Sequence record: MN871445.1 | Strand: one strand, 5' to 3' | DNA: 64,000 nucleotides | Shown: positions 3,396 to 10,154 of the stretch, one piece after another | How the letters are laid out: every line of letters begins with the position of its first letter | Position numbering within the stretch: position 1 is the first letter of the stretch | Made by a program: the position numbers and the translations under genes | The notes under the pieces: generated by a model | Told to the model about the DNA's origin: nothing | The model's input: only the letters and a program-made list of their open reading frames with translations | Database searches by the model: none

Positions 3396-5567
3396 ATGAC
3401 TGCATCAAAATTATTGCGAATCCCTACTCACGTTAAGCGCACTAACGTCTCTCTCGAAGAACGTGAAGCTGTTGCTGAGCGCGATCCGGATATTGTCGAC
3501 ATGTCTCAAACTCCTGATGACGTTAATCCTGATGATGCGGGCCAAGCTGCAACTGCTTCTTCAGAGGCGACATCTCAGGACGGTGACGTGGCAGGCTCTG
3601 CTGATGTCGCCGAGACAAGCACTGACGCGGGTGTTGCGTCTACAGAAGCTACCGGCGACGTTGCCACTGGGGCAGAACCAGATGCCGCTGCATCTGCAGA
3701 TGACACTACGGCGAGTGCCGACGAAACCCAAACCGATGAATCCGGTACCGCTGGCGGTGACGAAGCCACCTCTGCAGCGGCTGATGTCGGTGCAACTACC
3801 GATACCGAAGCCACGCCCCCGGCCGACGATAGCGTCGTAGATAGTGGTAGCGATGCTGCTAACGCCGATCTTGACGTGCAAGCTGATATCACACCGCCTG
3901 AAGAAGCACAGACCACCGAAGCAGATACCGGTTCAGATACTGCAACCGATGCCGGTGACCTGGGTGGCGATGCAGGTATTGGGGAAGATACTGGTTCTTC
4001 CGTAGAACCAGCTGCTGAGTCCACCAACACTGATGTTGAAACCACTACGGATACAACAGATGTTGATACCACCGCATCAACAGATGAAGCTGAACCAGTT
4101 GAAAATCCGGCAGCCGACATTCCGGAAGAAGCTCTTACTTCGGCCTGGGTTCAGGGCGTAGCCGTGGATAACCACGATGACGTCACCGACCTCAAAGATG
4201 GCGAAGAAGAACTGGATGTCTATCAGCACAATGAAAATGAACTTCATGATGCTGCGACCAGTCTGGAAGAGTTACGCAACTGTTGTGTCCCAGTTGCCGT
4301 TGTTACTCACACTGAAACTGATGACCTGAGCACGCCGGTGCAAACCGAAATGGTTGCTGATATCAGTGATAAAGCTGTTGACTTACTGACGGCCAGTAGC
4401 AACCAAGTACTTTCACGCCTGGGAAGTCAATTGGACCTGCCGGCAACTACTGAATCTGCAGGTACTTCGGTTGAGCGTCTTCAGGTCACCATGGAAGCCA
4501 TCGATGGTAAGCTCAAACAGATTTGGGAAGCCATCAAGAAAATGGCTGTCGCTGCCTGGGAAGCATTTGTTAATTTTGTCAAGGGCATCTTTGACAAAGC
4601 ACAACGTATTCGCAACCAGGTGAGTGGCCTGCGTAAATTCGTTGCGCAATACAAAGGCGCTACGCCAGAAGCTACTGAATTTGAAAACAACGCCGTCTGG
4701 GCCGCATGTAGTCTGGAAGTAGGTACCCAGAAATTCGAATTCGACGCAAATAAAATCTCGCCGACATTTGAAACCTACTTGAGTGCGGCGAAACCATATC
4801 TGCTGAATGCAAGCCGTGCCCTTGCGCCGGGTCTTAACATGGTCTTCGATCGGGTTGCCGCAATCGACCCGGAAAACGAGGAAACTAAGAAAGCAATGTG
4901 GGACGCATTTGGTAATCTGATGAATCGGTATACTAAATCCGTCATTATGGTTACCAAAATGGTTGGTGGCGAAACCAAACTGGGTGACCATGAATTAGAA
5001 GGTGGTTCCCTTACTGATGGGTTGCAGCCGATTTATTCTGCCCCTGGTCTGGGTGGTGGTTTCTTGTATGTCGATGTAATGGACCCGAAAGTCAGCGTAG
5101 ATGTCGCTGCGGTTGCATTCTGGAATCGTGCAGGTGCGCGGTATGTTCGGAATCATCCGGTTGTTCCAGAAGGTGCAACAGTTCAGACTCTTTCCGTTGA
5201 ACAAATGGAAACCATGCTGGATCAGATCGACGAAGCCATGGAAACTGTGTTAGAATATCGTTCAACCTTTACGGTGTTCGAACAGCAATTAGCAAAAGGT
5301 CAGCAGGCTACCTCCAAGTTGGCAAATAAACTGGAAAATAGTAGTGAGGCCAATATTGCTATTTTCGCATCGATGAAGTTGGTGCCTAAACTGACTGGAT
5401 TCAACCAAGCCGTAATCAATGGTTTGTATTTCCAATCCAGTGCGATGCTTCAATACATCGTAGCGTCTACCAAGCAATATTCAGCCAATGAAAGCGCTGT
5501 AGATTCAACAGCGCAGGGTGTGGCCGACAAGGGTGCAGGTAAACTGCCAGCACCTGAGGCAGCATAA
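3396..5567 (+). CDS. Inner head protein, phiKZ gp93-family paralog 2, with very long acidic propeptide
   Basis: About 250 aa D/E/A/T-rich region, then ATES...VTMEAIDGKLKQIWEAIKKMAVAAWEAFVNFVKGIFD, nearly the same motif as in 1896..3323. Confidence 0.85.
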   Translation: MTASKLLRIPTHVKRTNVSLEEREAVAERDPDIVDMSQTPDDVNPDDAGQAATASSEATSQDGDVAGSADVAETSTDAGVASTEATGDVATGAEPDAAASADDTTASADETQTDESGTAGGDEATSAAADVGATTDTEATPPADDSVVDSGSDAANADLDVQADITPPEEAQTTEADTGSDTATDAGDLGGDAGIGEDTGSSVEPAAESTNTDVETTTDTTDVDTTASTDEAEPVENPAADIPEEALTSAWVQGVAVDNHDDVTDLKDGEEELDVYQHNENELHDAATSLEELRNCCVPVAVVTHTETDDLSTPVQTEMVADISDKAVDLLTASSNQVLSRLGSQLDLPATTESAGTSVERLQVTMEAIDGKLKQIWEAIKKMAVAAWEAFVNFVKGIFDKAQRIRNQVSGLRKFVAQYKGATPEATEFENNAVWAACSLEVGTQKFEFDANKISPTFETYLSAAKPYLLNASRALAPGLNMVFDRVAAIDPENEETKKAMWDAFGNLMNRYTKSVIMVTKMVGGETKLGDHELEGGSLTDGLQPIYSAPGLGGGFLYVDVMDPKVSVDVAAVAFWNRAGARYVRNHPVVPEGATVQTLSVEQMETMLDQIDEAMETVLEYRSTFTVFEQQLAKGQQATSKLANKLENSSEANIAIFASMKLVPKLTGFNQAVINGLYFQSSAMLQYIVASTKQYSANESAVDSTAQGVADKGAGKLPAPEAA

Positions 5568-5661: not shown

Positions 5662-6954
5662 ATGACTGGGTTGGTGAACACCCCACAATCAGAATTACCG
5701 AATTCCCCGACGTCGTATGCCGAAGTTCATCAGATGGTGACTGAACTCGCGCACCAACAAAACGACATTAGCAAAAAAGACCAGCAGGTGCAAGAACACA
5801 CTCAGGTCGTTGACGAGCTTCGCAATACTGGCGACATGATATCCGCATTGGGGGCTATCGTTAAATACAATATTGATGGCAAGCCAATGTCGCCGTTCCA
5901 GTCTTCACTGATGAAAAATGCCTTATGGCATAGTGGAAGCATCAGTCAAGAAGCGTATAACAGCGATACCGTCATCTCTATGGAGTCCTTACGCAAAATC
6001 CTGGCCGACATATGGGTTGCAATTAAAAACAGCCTAAAACGTCTTTTAGAGCGTTTAATTGACTTCTTAACGACATACTACGGAATGCTAAATACCGTAG
6101 AAGATTTGGCTTTGAAATTAAAAGCCATACTCAAAGAAAATAATTGGCAGACCGTAACGGTAACCTCGTTTCCATCTAACAATGCGCGCAAAATTGCCGT
6201 TGGTGGAAAACTGAAGTCAACCTGGGTGGAAGACATCGCTGGAACATTGACGGTATTAGCGGACTCGGACAAAAATGTCATTGACGCAATTGGTGACTTT
6301 AATCTTCGCGCTACCGACCAGGTAATTAAAACATTAAAAACGGATAAACTTCCCGATTTCAATTGGGCTGTGTTATCCGGCACAATCGGTACCCTGCGGC
6401 GGACTATGACTGCCACCATATCACGATATGGCGTGACATCATACGCCAAGCCTTTTGGTATTGAAACCTATTACTGTAGTGGTGTATTACCTGGCGAATG
6501 GCAATTGGGCTGTAAACAAATTCCAATTCAAAATGCCGATAGTCAGCATGATGCTGCGCGAGCAATCATTGAGGGTATGGGTGATCAGTATTTCGTCATC
6601 CTGTCTAAAGAACAAGCAGGGCCCGATGCTTTGCCATTACCTTCCTTAAACGTCATTGAATCTGCATGCGACGATATCATCAAAGTAGTCACTACGTTGA
6701 AAGATTCTACTCGCAAACTGGATGTAGAACTCAACGGCACCTTGAAAAAATCCATTGATACAATCGATGGACTGATGCACCGCATTCAGGGAAGTACCGA
6801 AATCAAAGATCGAGAAGCGGTGGACTTCGTCATGCGGGCGACTCAAATATCCAGTAAACTTAGTCGTCCTTATTTGCAATTGCTGGGAAATATCCTACCC
6901 GCATACACTCGGGCCTTATTGCAATGTGTTCTGGTCTATCGTGATGGAGCATAA
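5662..6954 (+). CDS. Inner head protein, phiKZ gp93-family paralog 3
   Basis: ISMESLRKILADIWVAIKNSLKRLLERLIDFL motif after a propeptide; SGVLPG motif matches SNVLPG and SGILPG in other paralogs. Confidence 0.8.
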   Translation: MTGLVNTPQSELPNSPTSYAEVHQMVTELAHQQNDISKKDQQVQEHTQVVDELRNTGDMISALGAIVKYNIDGKPMSPFQSSLMKNALWHSGSISQEAYNSDTVISMESLRKILADIWVAIKNSLKRLLERLIDFLTTYYGMLNTVEDLALKLKAILKENNWQTVTVTSFPSNNARKIAVGGKLKSTWVEDIAGTLTVLADSDKNVIDAIGDFNLRATDQVIKTLKTDKLPDFNWAVLSGTIGTLRRTMTATISRYGVTSYAKPFGIETYYCSGVLPGEWQLGCKQIPIQNADSQHDAARAIIEGMGDQYFVILSKEQAGPDALPLPSLNVIESACDDIIKVVTTLKDSTRKLDVELNGTLKKSIDTIDGLMHRIQGSTEIKDREAVDFVMRATQISSKLSRPYLQLLGNILPAYTRALLQCVLVYRDGA

Positions 6955-6990
6955 ACTCAATGAGGGAGGCTAATGGCCTCCCTTTTATGC
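6949..6990 (+). terminator. Intrinsic terminator, two-tier hairpin
   Basis: AGGGAGGC-TAATG-GCCTCCCT then TTTATGC, pairing with GCATAAA at 6949. Confidence 0.85.
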
Positions 6991-6996
6991 TGAATA

Positions 6997-7255
6997 TAAA
7001 AAAATACTATTTAGGATTACAATTTGAGTACACTTGGGGATGAAACATAAAAGACCTAAGGAAACGTTCCGTGCGAAGCACTCCACGTTACTATCACTAA
7101 TTAAAAAAGATAAAATAAATATACTTAGTAAGAAAGAAAAAAGATCTTAGATTTGGGGGTTTGGGGGAGGGGTAGGAGGAGCGAAGCTCCTCCGTAGGGG
7201 AGGGCCATAAAACATGATCGTGTGGGGAAGGGAAGTAAACCCTTCCCAAATATGC
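6997..7255. other. Structured non-coding element A (GNA mini-hairpins, A-tract, G-tracts)
   Basis: No credible ORF. Two GCGAAGC mini-hairpins (7071-7081, 7175-7193), A-rich tract 7100-7142, five G-runs 7155-7204, hairpin 7225-7247 followed by AAATATGC; layout shared with 48573-48737. Confidence 0.7.
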
Positions 7256-7312
7256 TGATTAATCGTTATTCAGAATTATCGTGTGTTTAACTCTACTAAG
7301 AGGTTTACTATT

Positions 7313-7750
7313 ATGAAACATTCTATTGTCCCTACACAAGCACCTAAATTCAGTATGATGGTAGGTTCCAGATCGTTGGAGACGGGTGTCAAGCTCACCT
7401 TAGAAGGCAATGGTCGCATTGATTTCTCACCGGTAATGTCCCAGGTGGTTGCGCCGAACAATGCACTGCAATCGACGGCATATTGGTCAGAGCGCGAACC
7501 ATCAACCTACTTTCTTAGTCTAGGCCAATATTCGTGTACGCCGTGTGGAATCATCAAATTCCATGAGGGGGATGTTGAAGAACCTAATGGAACGACGGTG
7601 GAGTCTTTGCTTCATGTCGTTGAACATCGACTCGAGTACCATCAATCCGGCGAATATCCCTGTAAGGAAAATGCAGCGGCATTGAGTGCCGTACGGGCCG
7701 CTTTGGTCGCGTTACATCATCGTAGCGAAAAACAAGGAAAAGTATCATGA
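7313..7750 (+). CDS. tad1: Tad1-like (Thoeris anti-defence 1 family) immune-signal sponge, divergent
   Basis: IKFHEG...NGTTVESLLHVVEHRLEYHQSGEYPCKENAAALSAVRAALVALHHR aligns with the recalled cbTad1 core IKFQKG...[46 protein letters not shown]. ATG at 7313 after AAGAGG. Confidence 0.75.
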   Translation: MKHSIVPTQAPKFSMMVGSRSLETGVKLTLEGNGRIDFSPVMSQVVAPNNALQSTAYWSEREPSTYFLSLGQYSCTPCGIIKFHEGDVEEPNGTTVESLLHVVEHRLEYHQSGEYPCKENAAALSAVRAALVALHHRSEKQGKVS

Positions 7751-8610
7751 TTCAAGTTGTATCTGCCTTTCCTGGCTGTGGGAAGAGTTGGTTTCATCGA
7801 CAGTTTACTGATGTTCTGGATAGCGATTCCAGTGCTTTTGATAAATCGGCATTCCCACAAAACTATATCTGCCATATCCGCAATACGATGGTACGAGATA
7901 AATGTATCTTTGTTAGCAGCCACGGTATGGTCAGGACTGCCATGATTGATTCTGGAATAGAATATATCCTGGTTTACCCCAGCCACGATATCAAAGAGGA
8001 GTTCCTCGAACGGTATCGCAAGCGCGGCAGTGAACCTCAATTTATTGAATTGTTGGATAAGAACTGGGATGGCTGGATTGGGGAATGTCAGGGGCAGCAA
8101 GGCTGCGTGCACGTGGTATTGCAATCAGGCCAATATCTCGCGGACGTCATTGAGTACGACCCACTTTATCGTCGCTTCACAATTAAAGAAGATGCGACTA
8201 CGTTTACCCCACAGCCGCACAAACATAAAACGGAATACATTGCCGTAGACTTCGATGGGACAATTGTAACCAATGATTGGCCTGAGGTTGGTAAAGATAC
8301 GGGTGCAATTGCGGTGCTGAGGGATTTACTTAGCGCGGGCTGTAAGTTAATCTTACATACGGTCAGAGAAGGAAAAGAGCTTAATGAAGCATTAGCTTAT
8401 TGCGCCAAACATGGAATCGATTTTATCGGAGTTAATGAGAATCGTGAGTTTCCTCCCGGCGGCGTCATCAGAGATAAACCTTATGCGGACGTATATATCG
8501 ATGACCGGGCGATGGGGTGTCCGCTTACTCACAATCCACTCACGCATAAAGAACCTTATGTAGATTGGTTTGCGATTAGAAAACAACTGGAGAAACGAGG
8601 AGTACTATAA
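7747..8610 (+). CDS. P-loop kinase / HAD-family phosphatase fusion protein
   Basis: N-terminal Walker A (SAFPGCGKS); C-terminal HAD motifs AVDFDGT, LHTVR, KPYADVYIDDR; ATGA overlap with the upstream gene. Confidence 0.8.
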   Translation: MIQVVSAFPGCGKSWFHRQFTDVLDSDSSAFDKSAFPQNYICHIRNTMVRDKCIFVSSHGMVRTAMIDSGIEYILVYPSHDIKEEFLERYRKRGSEPQFIELLDKNWDGWIGECQGQQGCVHVVLQSGQYLADVIEYDPLYRRFTIKEDATTFTPQPHKHKTEYIAVDFDGTIVTNDWPEVGKDTGAIAVLRDLLSAGCKLILHTVREGKELNEALAYCAKHGIDFIGVNENREFPPGGVIRDKPYADVYIDDRAMGCPLTHNPLTHKEPYVDWFAIRKQLEKRGVL

Positions 8611-10154
8611 TGCCGAGTATCGGACTTAACCTCCCTGAGGGGTATGAGTTAATCTCACGCCCTGTTGCTCAGGGTATTGCTCAGCGGGTGATATCACATC
8701 TGGGAATTCAAGATAAAGTCAGTATCCTGTTTCCTGGTGATGCTGAGGTAGCGGCTCAGGCCGGCAGTACATTGGGGGAACAGAAGGAAGGGGGTCCGAA
8801 TACACGCTTTGCCAGTACTCAAAGACTTCAAGTCAGCATGAATGAACAGGTTCTGGAGGGGGAGGTTTTAGCAACCCCAACTTGGCAAGTTAACCAACCC
8901 CCCATTTTCTCCGACCCTAAACTAGGCATCGCCATGAAACCTATCTACCATTTGGTGGAAGGGGTATTGTCTTTTACTTATCGTGCCGCTGACCAGACCA
9001 GTGCAGAACAATGGAAAAATAGACTGTTACGATATATTTCCCAAAACCGCGCTGAAATGTACCATGAAATTATTTATGCGTATACCATCCCAGGCCAGTT
9101 CATTACCATCTTGGCTGAAATTCACAAGTTGCGAGAACAAATCGCACCGTATGGCGATACCGTCATTGAATATCTGCGCAACCATTTCAGTGATAGAGTA
9201 GATGTTAAAACTAACATGGCTGGTAAGGGTGCTGCGTTTGCCGTGGATGAAATTCAGAAAGGTGTCATCGGTTGGTTTGATTGGACTATCCCACCAACCC
9301 CAGAAAAAACCAGTGAAGAAAGCACGTATACCGCTACCTTTGAGTTCCATTATCAATATCAGCAGGTTACTGGGGTACATCTGAAATATCCTATTATCGT
9401 ACACCAACAGCTTTTGCCCAGTAATTTACGTCCGTTGAATTTATCCTACGAACTTAATCGCAGCTTACCGACGTATATGTCTTTAGCTAAGCAGGAATAT
9501 CAGGCGGTTAAAAAGGAAACAGACGGCTATTATGCAACGCAGGAAGGTATCCGTTATCCTGATTTTGATGAATGGGCGCCAAATCACGTGATAGCCGATC
9601 AGATTCCATTACTGACCGTAATGTTGACTATTTCTGCGGATGACCCTCGATTTCTTTTGAACATCCAAGAACTATCCCATTGGAATTTTAATCCAGATAT
9701 TCTCGAGTTTCTGCTGGCTGAACCTAAATGGGCAACATTAACCAAATTTACCCCAGTCTTAATCACGCTGTATTGTGATGGCGACAAATGCGATGACCAG
9801 ATCGTACAGTTGGATGCTTCCGGCGATGTACGTACAACCATCGATTTGGACTTAAGGCGCCAATACCACATCGTCATTAGTGCGATGTCTGATTTATCAC
9901 AGTTGAATAAAAATAACACCGATCTTTTGCGACAATACCCTAAAGCCGCCATGGTTGTGCTGTATGCCTTAGAACCTCGTTTAGAATCTTGGGGTAAATT
10001 ACCAGAAGTATTGGGTGATAAGCTTGTATCTCGCGTGGGTTGGTTGGAAGCAATCAACGTCATTAAAACAACTTCCCCTATTTTCCGTACAGCAAAATAC
10101 TACTCACGTTTTACGGTGGGGTCTTACATCCTGGCTACAGCGGAGAAAAAATAA
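8610..10154 (+). CDS. Probable virion structural protein (phiKZ-like tail/baseplate block)
   Basis: 514 aa, TAATG-coupled to the upstream gene; position between inner-head genes and the hub-like gene. Confidence 0.55.
   Translation: MPSIGLNLPEGYELISRPVAQGIAQRVISHLGIQDKVSILFPGDAEVAAQAGSTLGEQKEGGPNTRFASTQRLQVSMNEQVLEGEVLATPTWQVNQPPIFSDPKLGIAMKPIYHLVEGVLSFTYRAADQTSAEQWKNRLLRYISQNRAEMYHEIIYAYTIPGQFITILAEIHKLREQIAPYGDTVIEYLRNHFSDRVDVKTNMAGKGAAFAVDEIQKGVIGWFDWTIPPTPEKTSEESTYTATFEFHYQYQQVTGVHLKYPIIVHQQLLPSNLRPLNLSYELNRSLPTYMSLAKQEYQAVKKETDGYYATQEGIRYPDFDEWAPNHVIADQIPLLTVMLTISADDPRFLLNIQELSHWNFNPDILEFLLAEPKWATLTKFTPVLITLYCDGDKCDDQIVQLDASGDVRTTIDLDLRRQYHIVISAMSDLSQLNKNNTDLLRQYPKAAMVVLYALEPRLESWGKLPEVLGDKLVSRVGWLEAINVIKTTSPIFRTAKYYSRFTVGSYILATAEKK

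Follow-up and report, generated by a model that had tools for sequence, protein, structure and literature searches.

Introduction

The polynucleotide kinase-phosphatase of phage T4 (Pnkp, or PseT) consists of an N-terminal P-loop kinase followed by a C-terminal capless phosphatase of the HAD superfamily with a DxDGT motif. In bacterial HD-Pnk end-healing enzymes, the HD domain comes first and the Pnk domain follows. For RNA repair in jumbo phages, two HAD phosphatase families have been described as the usual removers of 3′-phosphates, and RlaP nucleotidyltransferases were found to track RNA ligases (Iyer et al., 2021; PMC7824862). Here we analyze a gene at positions 7747..8610 (+ strand) of a 64,000-nucleotide stretch of sequence record MN871445.1, which we refer to as the window. 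An original prediction, made from the sequence alone, described its product as having a Walker A motif at the extreme N-terminus and a DxDGT HAD domain at the C-terminus, joined by a short linker and arranged in the domain order of T4 Pnkp. Our analysis bears this out. The Walker A motif spans A7-S14, the DxDGT motif D168-T172, the linker has about 23 residues, and kinase and HAD follow each other in one polypeptide of 287 amino acids, compared to 301 in T4 Pnkp. The protein is a new combination of an uncharacterized phage kinase-fold family with a BT0820-type capless HAD, although the kinase-phosphatase theme itself is already known.

The fusion is a single gene of a nucleus-forming jumbo phage

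Positions 7000-9000 of the window are 100% identical to Serratia phage KpHz_2 (MN871445), an isolate from Klebsiella, and 98% identical to Klebsiella phage vB_KvM-Eowyn (Eowyn). As a member of Chimalliviridae with genes for PhuZ tubulin and a nuclear shell protein, Eowyn is a nucleus-forming jumbo phage. We used Eowyn as a whole-genome stand-in for KpHz_2, with the complete sequence of 265 kb joined from seven stretches. Public sequencing runs that contain the sequence come mainly from environmental metagenomes such as those of wastewater.

The open reading frame (ORF) begins with ATG and encodes 287 amino acids followed by a stop codon; its orthologue is Eowyn gp124. An AAGGA ribosome-binding site (7733..7737, + strand) is located 9 nt 5′ of the ATG. 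Comparison with an 84%-identical orthologue yielded proportions of nonsynonymous and synonymous differences (pN and pS) of 0.10 and 0.70, and a ratio of nonsynonymous to synonymous substitution rates (dN/dS) of 0.05 overall. Taken by region, the ratio amounts to 0.055 for the linker and 0.044 for the HAD half, and synonymous sites of the N half are saturated (pN 0.14, pS 0.82). Because of the overall dN/dS of 0.05, we conclude that 7747..8610 is a genuine single gene under strong purifying selection.

The whole protein returned zero matches in Pfam and zero in PADLOC. Separate profile searches for each domain, as proposed in the original prediction, resolved it into two PHROG families: residues 2-137 match phrog_4182, for which PHROG assigns no function (E 2.4e-55), and residues 159-285 match phrog_1238 (E 3.9e-31). 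The linker between the domains covers amino acids 138-160 (8158..8226, + strand) and is itself under purifying selection, as its dN/dS shows.

The N-terminal domain adopts a predicted P-loop kinase fold

The N-terminal P-loop kinase-fold domain (amino acids 1-137; 7747..8157, + strand) belongs to phrog_4182, a family without a Pfam model, and has no match in Pfam, NCBIfam or PADLOC. Its profile found nothing significant among PDB sequences, the top match being shikimate kinase with E 0.09. The AlphaFold model of the domain has a predicted local distance difference test (pLDDT) score of 95.5 and displays the features of the P-loop kinase fold, namely the Walker A motif, a five-stranded parallel core and lid arginines. 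The nearest solved folds identified by Foldseek are P-loop kinases, with the best E-value for mammalian PNKP (E 7.6e-4, template modelling (TM) score of only 0.49); guanylate kinases, AK6/Fap7 and Trl1, the RNA kinase of fungi, are among the matches as well. With P-loop kinases as its closest solved folds, the N-domain is placed by the model on an orphan branch within the nucleotide/polynucleotide-kinase fold. Because each domain was modelled on its own, the models carry no inter-domain geometry.

In an alignment of 72 family members the invariant positions are F8, P9, G12, K13, Y40, P78 and R93. The first four lie in the Walker A motif A7-F-P-G-C-G-K13-S14 (7765..7788, + strand). At least 90% conserved are D25-S-D27-S-S29, F36-P-x-N39, S57-x-H59, R63, K83 and R89. 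It should be mentioned that MAFFT repeatedly placed the HAD segment 'GT-IVTH-YPxIGK' onto the Walker A segment 'SAFPGxGKS'. Two of the conserved segments are putative functional motifs. R89-Y-R-K-R93-G94 (8011..8028, + strand) resembles the arginine motif of a kinase lid and may serve as such. D25-S-D27-S-S29 (7819..7833, + strand) is positioned by the model right after strand 2. An Asp after strand 2 activates the acceptor hydroxyl in PNK, shikimate and gluconate kinases, nicotinamide riboside kinase and zeta toxins, and we know of no such Asp in nucleoside monophosphate (NMP) kinases. Because the paired D25 and D27 match the Asp position of the hydroxyl kinases, the acceptor would, by analogy, be a hydroxyl group. 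D25-S-D27-S-S29 is thus a candidate catalytic base or acceptor-binding loop, comparable to the DxD/D motifs of the P-loop kinases that phosphorylate hydroxyls.

The C-terminal domain is related to BT0820

The C-terminal capless HAD phosphatase domain (amino acids 161-287; 8227..8607, + strand) belongs to the wider BT0820/2OBB family and contains motifs I-IV together with a Rossmann-like core, as expected for the HAD superfamily. Motif I, D168-F-D170-G-T172 (8248..8262, + strand), supplies the nucleophile and the acid/base Asp and is invariant in the family alignment. In the motif II region T205-V-R207 (8359..8367, + strand) R207 is invariant, and T205 is invariant in the four fusions. K244 of motif III and D252-D253 of motif IV (8476..8505, + strand) are conserved as well.

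The relationship to PDB entry 2obb was found at the level of both sequence (33% identity; E 3.6e-13 when one sequence was used and 3.8e-50 with a profile) and structure. The domain model, with a pLDDT of 86.5, was matched by Foldseek to 2obb with TM scores of 0.75/0.82, while all other matches remained at 0.43 or below. The latter are capless or small-cap HADs and include T4 Pnkp (2ia5), KDO8P phosphatase, GmhB, lipin/Pah and MDP-1. The NCBIfam model NF046079 (BT0820-family HAD phosphatase) matches the C-domain with E 1.5e-23 and 83.6 bits, compared to an equivalog cut-off of 165. Judged by these scores, the C-domain appears to be a clearly related member of the wider BT0820 family that falls below equivalog level. 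BT0820 itself (Bacteroides thetaiotaomicron BT_0820, 2OBB) is described in the PDB only as 'hypothetical/conserved protein', and we found no paper on it. It shares the capless core and all four HAD motifs with the C-domain. Unlike BT0820, the C-domain is fused to a kinase-like domain and carries a PYVDW...GIL C-terminal extension, which is common to crAss001 gp60 and a few phage proteins.

Stand-alone genes of this HAD family occur near genes for deoxynucleoside kinases, NrdD/NrdG, NadR, dCMP deaminase, ThyX and phosphoribosyltransferase. Eowyn gp124, phrog_1238 and many homologues in Vi01-like phages are labelled 'phosphoheptose isomerase'. As we detected neither a Pfam or NCBIfam isomerase match nor the SIS fold, this label is most likely a propagated mis-annotation of a HAD phosphatase.

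The likeness to T4 Pnkp is one of architecture

Besides domain order and size, T4 Pnkp and the fusion protein have in common the position of Walker A at the extreme N-terminus and an R-x-x-x-R-G lid-like motif. Alignment of the fusion protein with T4 Pnkp by BLASTP and hhalign is limited to a P-loop stretch of 20 residues and to DxDGT. Comparison of the C-domain with PNKP-type HADs gave an hhalign probability of 5%, the structural match to 2ia5 has a TM score of only 0.42, and a search of the PDB with the C-domain profile retrieved 2obb and 1xpj and no PNKP above noise. T4 Pnkp is assigned to phrog_505/415 (Pfam AAA_33 and HAD_PNKP), whereas the fusion protein is assigned to phrog_4182/1238, so the earlier statement that both halves belong to subfamilies other than those of PseT was correct. 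Where T4 Pnkp has an Asp-x-x-Arg acceptor motif, the fusion protein has D-S-D-S-S-A-F after strand 2. The settings of the genes differ, too. T4 pseT is located in the early region and T4 Pnkp has a partner RNA ligase, while the fusion gene lies in a head-gene operon and no partner ligase was recognized in the Eowyn genome. Because both halves fall into other families than those of T4 Pnkp, the sequence comparisons indicate a likeness of architecture, not descent, and point to a kinase-HAD fusion that was assembled independently.

The fusion is rare but has parallels

The full-length fusion was detected in four phage records, i.e. KpHz_2, Eowyn (two accessions) and KpGz_1. Metagenomic data added near-identical copies and one divergent protein, P0052, with 42% identity. 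P0052 is encoded on a contig of 1.5 kb; it aligns end to end, keeps the linker region and retains every catalytic residue. The catalytic residues of both halves are intact in all four aligned fusions, down to this 42% identity. A scan of IMG/VR revealed N-domain loci of the stand-alone type only. Across the phage genomes and the IMG/VR and metagenomic loci surveyed, the two domain families are otherwise almost never found together; their coupling is thus rare and specific to this lineage.

The same HAD subfamily is, however, paired with other kinases elsewhere. The crAss001 protein gp61 is a genuine relative of the T4 Pnk kinase (E 4e-13 across residues 1-141 of T4 Pnkp; NNDDIR in place of NRDDYR), and its gene overlaps the start of gp60; the two are annotated as polynucleotide kinase and polynucleotide kinase/phosphatase. 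The HAD of gp60 is 40% identical to the C-domain over the full length, including the PYVDW...GIL tail (E 8e-28). The order of kinase and HAD is therefore the same as in the fusion, but the two are encoded by separate genes, and gp61 is unrelated to the N-domain except for the P-loop. In proteins P0046-P0050 of metagenomic phages a dNMP-kinase-like domain is located N-terminal to a HAD of the same family with 36-38% identity. These proteins have the architecture of the 287-amino-acid fusion at a length of 284-293 amino acids, but their kinase half belongs to another family: it has a weak match to Pfam DNMK, and the N-domain profile shares only the P-loop with it. On two related contigs, the gene of this DNMK-like/HAD fusion is positioned between ThyX and NrdD/NrdG, and an RNA ligase of PF09414 (Rnl2) is encoded 3.7-4.5 kb downstream. 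Thus, the BT0820-type HAD subfamily is paired with three P-loop kinase families, always with the kinase first.

phrog_4182 is a widespread phage protein family

An exhaustive HMMER search with the whole protein, in which a match to one or the other half was counted, resulted in 5,574 representative proteins with E ≤ 0.001, and the N half accounts for nearly all of the best 150 of these 5,574 matches. By tblastn, the N-domain is present in 253 phage genomes. These include Epseptimavirus (T5-like) phages, AR9/PBS1, SP-10, SBSphiC, SPO1-like phages, T4-like phages of Acinetobacter, Proteus and Morganella, and many jumbo phages. The match in SP-10 had suggested a 5-hydroxymethyluracil DNA kinase, a candidate that we set aside, as the N-domain also occurs in T5-like and uracil-DNA phages. 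Stand-alone phrog_4182 proteins are 35-55% identical to the N-domain over the full length and share its motifs. They are usually single-domain proteins of 140-175 amino acids encoded in early or accessory regions, whereas the N-domain described here is fused to a HAD. For example, the AR9 gene lies downstream of annotated early promoters, and that of one T5-like phage belongs to a block of small genes, most of them without annotation, immediately internal to the terminal repeat.

Other fusion partners of phrog_4182 are S80 prohead protease, HD, TIR, KTSC, YopX and NUDIX domains. In one member (P0112) the kinase-like domain is preceded by an HD phosphohydrolase, which is also the arrangement of the bacterial HD-Pnk enzymes. 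In another, the metagenomic, high-GC protein P0004 of 395 amino acids, a TIR domain precedes a homologue of the N-domain (42% identity), and a membrane segment is predicted; through this fusion the family might be linked to NAD-derived signalling. Fusions to the S80 prohead protease (phiKZ-type) include P0124 and a 779-amino-acid 'protease' of Pantoea phage Survivor. The surroundings of P0112 and P0124 contained nothing informative. Some relatives of the N-domain have long poly-acidic linkers, and some of these then carry a second copy without P-loop. Examples of acidic linkers and S80 fusions are P0057, P0101, P0092, P0151, P0060 and P0139; P0124; and L020:4001-6337. In their sequence features, both types are reminiscent of capsid-internal proteins.

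Genes near N-domain loci include NrdD/G, IMPDH/GMP reductase and a nucleoside deoxyribosyltransferase-like protein. Clustering of the neighbourhoods of 87 N-domain loci identified no conserved partner except in one freshwater phage lineage.

The fusion gene lies in a head-gene operon next to a Tad1-like gene

The start of the fusion gene overlaps the stop codon of the preceding gene (ATGA at 7747-7750), and its stop codon overlaps the start of the following gene (TAATG). The downstream coupled gene (8610..10154, + strand; 514 amino acids, phrog_3289) corresponds to ORF098 in the Eowyn record and is followed by the gene of a head-tail joining protein. Three genes for phiKZ-type internal head proteins are located 5′ of the fusion gene. 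The fusion gene is thus located within a tightly packed, translationally coupled head-gene operon. A sigma-70 promoter scan gave 16 sites compared to 16.6 expected by chance, using a model that is inapplicable to phiKZ-like polymerases.

Two of the phiKZ-type internal head proteins (PF12699) are encoded at 3396..5567 and 5662..6954 of the window (+ strand). The N-terminal ~270 amino acids of the former are extremely acidic and rich in Thr, Asp and Ala. Immediately 3′ of the stop codon of 5662..6954 we found a GC-rich hairpin (6963..6983) with an 8-bp stem (AGGGAGGC...GCCTCCCT). It stands before a gap of ~300 bp ahead of position 7283 and probably marks a transcript boundary.

The upstream coupled gene (7283..7750, + strand) encodes a protein of 145-155 amino acids whose C-terminal half resembles both Tad1 and phiKZ gp184. 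Residues 85-150 match Tad1 structure chains (8kbb, 7uav) with E about 2e-4. The same residues match the phiKZ capsid protein gp184 (8Y6V chain I) slightly better, with E 8e-5. gp184 is a minor component located at the capsid vertex, on its inner side (PMC11297242). A protein-language-model search with the 7283..7750 product led to clusters bearing PF24729 (Acb2_Tad1_hairpin). The precomputed Pfam match of PF24729 on the orthologue is only weak, and PF24729 was not recovered on the product itself in direct Pfam scans. In the Eowyn record the orthologue is annotated as structural. The protein may therefore have a Tad1-like domain and yet be a capsid component. This hints that a capsid protein of jumbo phages employs a Tad1-type hairpin domain as well, or that the relationship runs the other way. 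The original prediction had placed the fusion gene next to a sponge. This stands as far as the C-terminal half of the neighbour is Tad1-like. As the gp184 match is slightly better and the setting is a head-gene operon, the neighbour is a weak argument for a role of the fusion protein in signalling.

Because its gene is part of the coupled head-gene operon, the fusion protein is probably a late product and might be packaged. Considering also the S80 fusions and the relatives with acidic linkers, some members of the N-domain family might reside inside the capsid.

Eowyn encodes RlaP but no recognizable RNA ligase

As noted before for the window, no RNA ligase is encoded there, and the same holds for the near-identical Eowyn genome as judged by Pfam and tblastn. 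The Eowyn annotation lists no ligase. A Pfam scan of 65 unannotated Eowyn ORFs (200-560 amino acids) detected no RNA ligase, and tblastn of Eowyn with T4 Rnl1 (RnlA) and two Rnl2 proteins was negative. The same 65-ORF scan recovered RlaP, Tad3, phiKZ head proteins and helix-turn-helix proteins. The RlaP nucleotidyltransferase (PF10127; Eowyn gp291, L005:38859-39641), whose family is associated with RNA repair, was identified with E 2e-53, and its neighbourhood is without a ligase. Given the reported co-distribution of RlaP and RNA ligases, an RlaP without recognizable ligase is unusual. Among the same ORFs, the homologue of Tad3, a type I Thoeris inhibitor (PF25185), has an E of 5.5e-29. Eowyn gp008 contains a Macro domain.

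Discussion

We tentatively propose, with a probability of roughly 40%, that the fusion protein is a bifunctional enzyme with Pnkp-like chemistry on nucleic-acid-derived substrates that was built independently of T4 Pnkp. The N-terminal P-loop domain would phosphorylate a hydroxyl at the expense of ATP, most likely the 5′-OH at the end of a nucleic acid or on a nucleoside 3′-phosphate. The C-terminal HAD with its open, capless site would remove a phosphomonoester, most likely a 3′-phosphate, from the same class of substrates. Jointly, termini or fragments with 5′-OH and 3′-phosphate would be converted to products with 5′-phosphate and 3′-OH. We infer the hydroxyl acceptor from D25-x-D27. The nucleic-acid-derived nature of the substrate and the action of both activities on one substrate are likewise proposed. 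Candidate targets are damaged RNA (repair), DNA ends, and mononucleotide breakdown products (salvage). By analogy, the crAss001 pair of Pnk-like kinase and HAD, and the kinase-HAD fusions clustered with Rnl2, offer circumstantial backing for an end-healing role. The fold matches to PNKP and Trl1, the member with HD-Pnk order, the capless HAD and the presence of RlaP in Eowyn also speak for the Pnkp-like proposal. The original prediction had considered either an independently assembled end-healing enzyme or an enzyme acting on nucleotide signals or their breakdown products. Of these two, the former agrees with our results in its independent assembly and, circumstantially, in its function, while the latter, as regards signals, leaned mainly on the sponge-like neighbour, which turned out to be a weak argument.

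Several observations weigh against the Pnkp-like proposal. No RNA ligase (Rnl1, Rnl2 or RtcB) was recognized in Eowyn, although very divergent or unusually sized ones could escape detection. RNA sealing would then need a host enzyme or an unrecognized ligase; alternatively, the enzyme feeds no ligase. ARAGORN found no tRNA or tmRNA gene in the 265-kb Eowyn genome or in the window. The Asp-x-x-Arg motif of PNK is not found as such in the N-domain, and both families are biochemically uncharacterized. The coupling of the domains has little breadth: none of 445 other phage genomes with either domain carries both (449 records, one match place each), and 87 N-domain loci from IMG/VR and metagenomes contained only one fusion (94% identical) and one distant HAD 5 kb away. 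Finally, the stand-alone HADs occur near nucleotide-metabolism genes and the Rnl2-linked fusions bear a DNMK-like kinase, which a role in nucleotide pools fits at least equally well.

Such a pool enzyme would combine a kinase for nucleosides or nucleotides with a HAD nucleotidase of other specificity and would adjust (d)NMP pools to the needs of phage DNA synthesis, without any role at polynucleotide ends. Besides the neighbours of the stand-alone HADs described above and the NrdD/G, IMPDH/GMP reductase and deoxyribosyltransferase-like genes near N-domain loci, it is favoured by the analogous fusions, with their DNMK-like kinase and their position between ThyX and NrdD. However, the neighbourhood of T4 pseT includes cd, nrdA/B, td and rnlA, and since pseT itself sits among cd and nrdA/B, a nucleotide-metabolism neighbourhood does not discriminate between the two roles. 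The fusion gene, moreover, lies among head genes and not among nucleotide-metabolism genes. On the side of mechanism, a kinase and a phosphatase acting at one position would run in a futile cycle, an invariant D-x-D directly behind strand 2 would be unusual in NMP kinases, which phosphorylate phosphates, and capless HADs more often act on large substrates. Taken together, we regard a pool enzyme as somewhat unlikely. It is less likely still that the fusion has no mechanistic meaning, i.e. that two accessory enzymes with separate, unrelated substrates were joined through stop-codon loss in one lineage. Confinement of the fusion to the Eowyn-like group and one metagenomic protein, and the separate occurrence of both families elsewhere, would be explained in this way. 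Yet divergence down to 42% identity has left the fusion intact, with a linker that is retained and under purifying selection, and on at least three separate occasions HADs of the same subfamily were joined to a kinase or placed beside one, with the order unchanged. Because this subfamily is tied to kinases in three separate ways, we consider the coupling probably meaningful.

Two further explanations connect the protein to host defence, and we hold both to be very improbable. In one, it would modify or destroy immune signal nucleotides of the host (ADP-ribose-derived or cyclic oligonucleotides) alongside the upstream Tad1-like protein. The Tad1 match (E about 2e-4) and the weak PF24729 match of this translationally coupled neighbour point in this direction, as do the TIR and NUDIX fusions of N-domain relatives and the Tad3 homologue and Macro domain protein of Eowyn. 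Conversely, the neighbour is slightly closer to phiKZ gp184 than to Tad1 and is annotated as structural, the gene 5′ of the 42%-identical P0052 is unrelated to it, PADLOC gave no match, and about 150 neighbour proteins revealed no recurrent link of the N-domain to sponge or signal-degrading genes. In the other, an enzyme packaged in the capsid and ejected with the DNA would act before the phage nucleus is present, and would either heal or re-mark nucleic-acid ends or modify an immune signal together with the Tad1-like protein.

The N-domain family comprises members in 253 sequenced phages and thousands of metagenomic proteins and has neither a Pfam model nor a solved structure. Considered alongside the parallel pairings of the HAD subfamily with two other kinase families, this rare fusion provides a testable lead on Pnkp-like phosphate shuffling by both families. 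If the Pnkp-like function is confirmed, kinase-phosphatase end-processing enzymes would have been assembled several times from different parts. The work would also correct the widely propagated 'phosphoheptose isomerase' annotation. If the enzyme proved to be packaged or directed at immune signals, it would represent a new type of phage counter-defence, and if it were indeed packaged and ejected with the DNA, phrog_4182 would constitute a novel group of hydroxyl kinases with which phages counter host defence. The chief value of the fusion is the handle that it provides on a very widespread, unstudied family of phage proteins.

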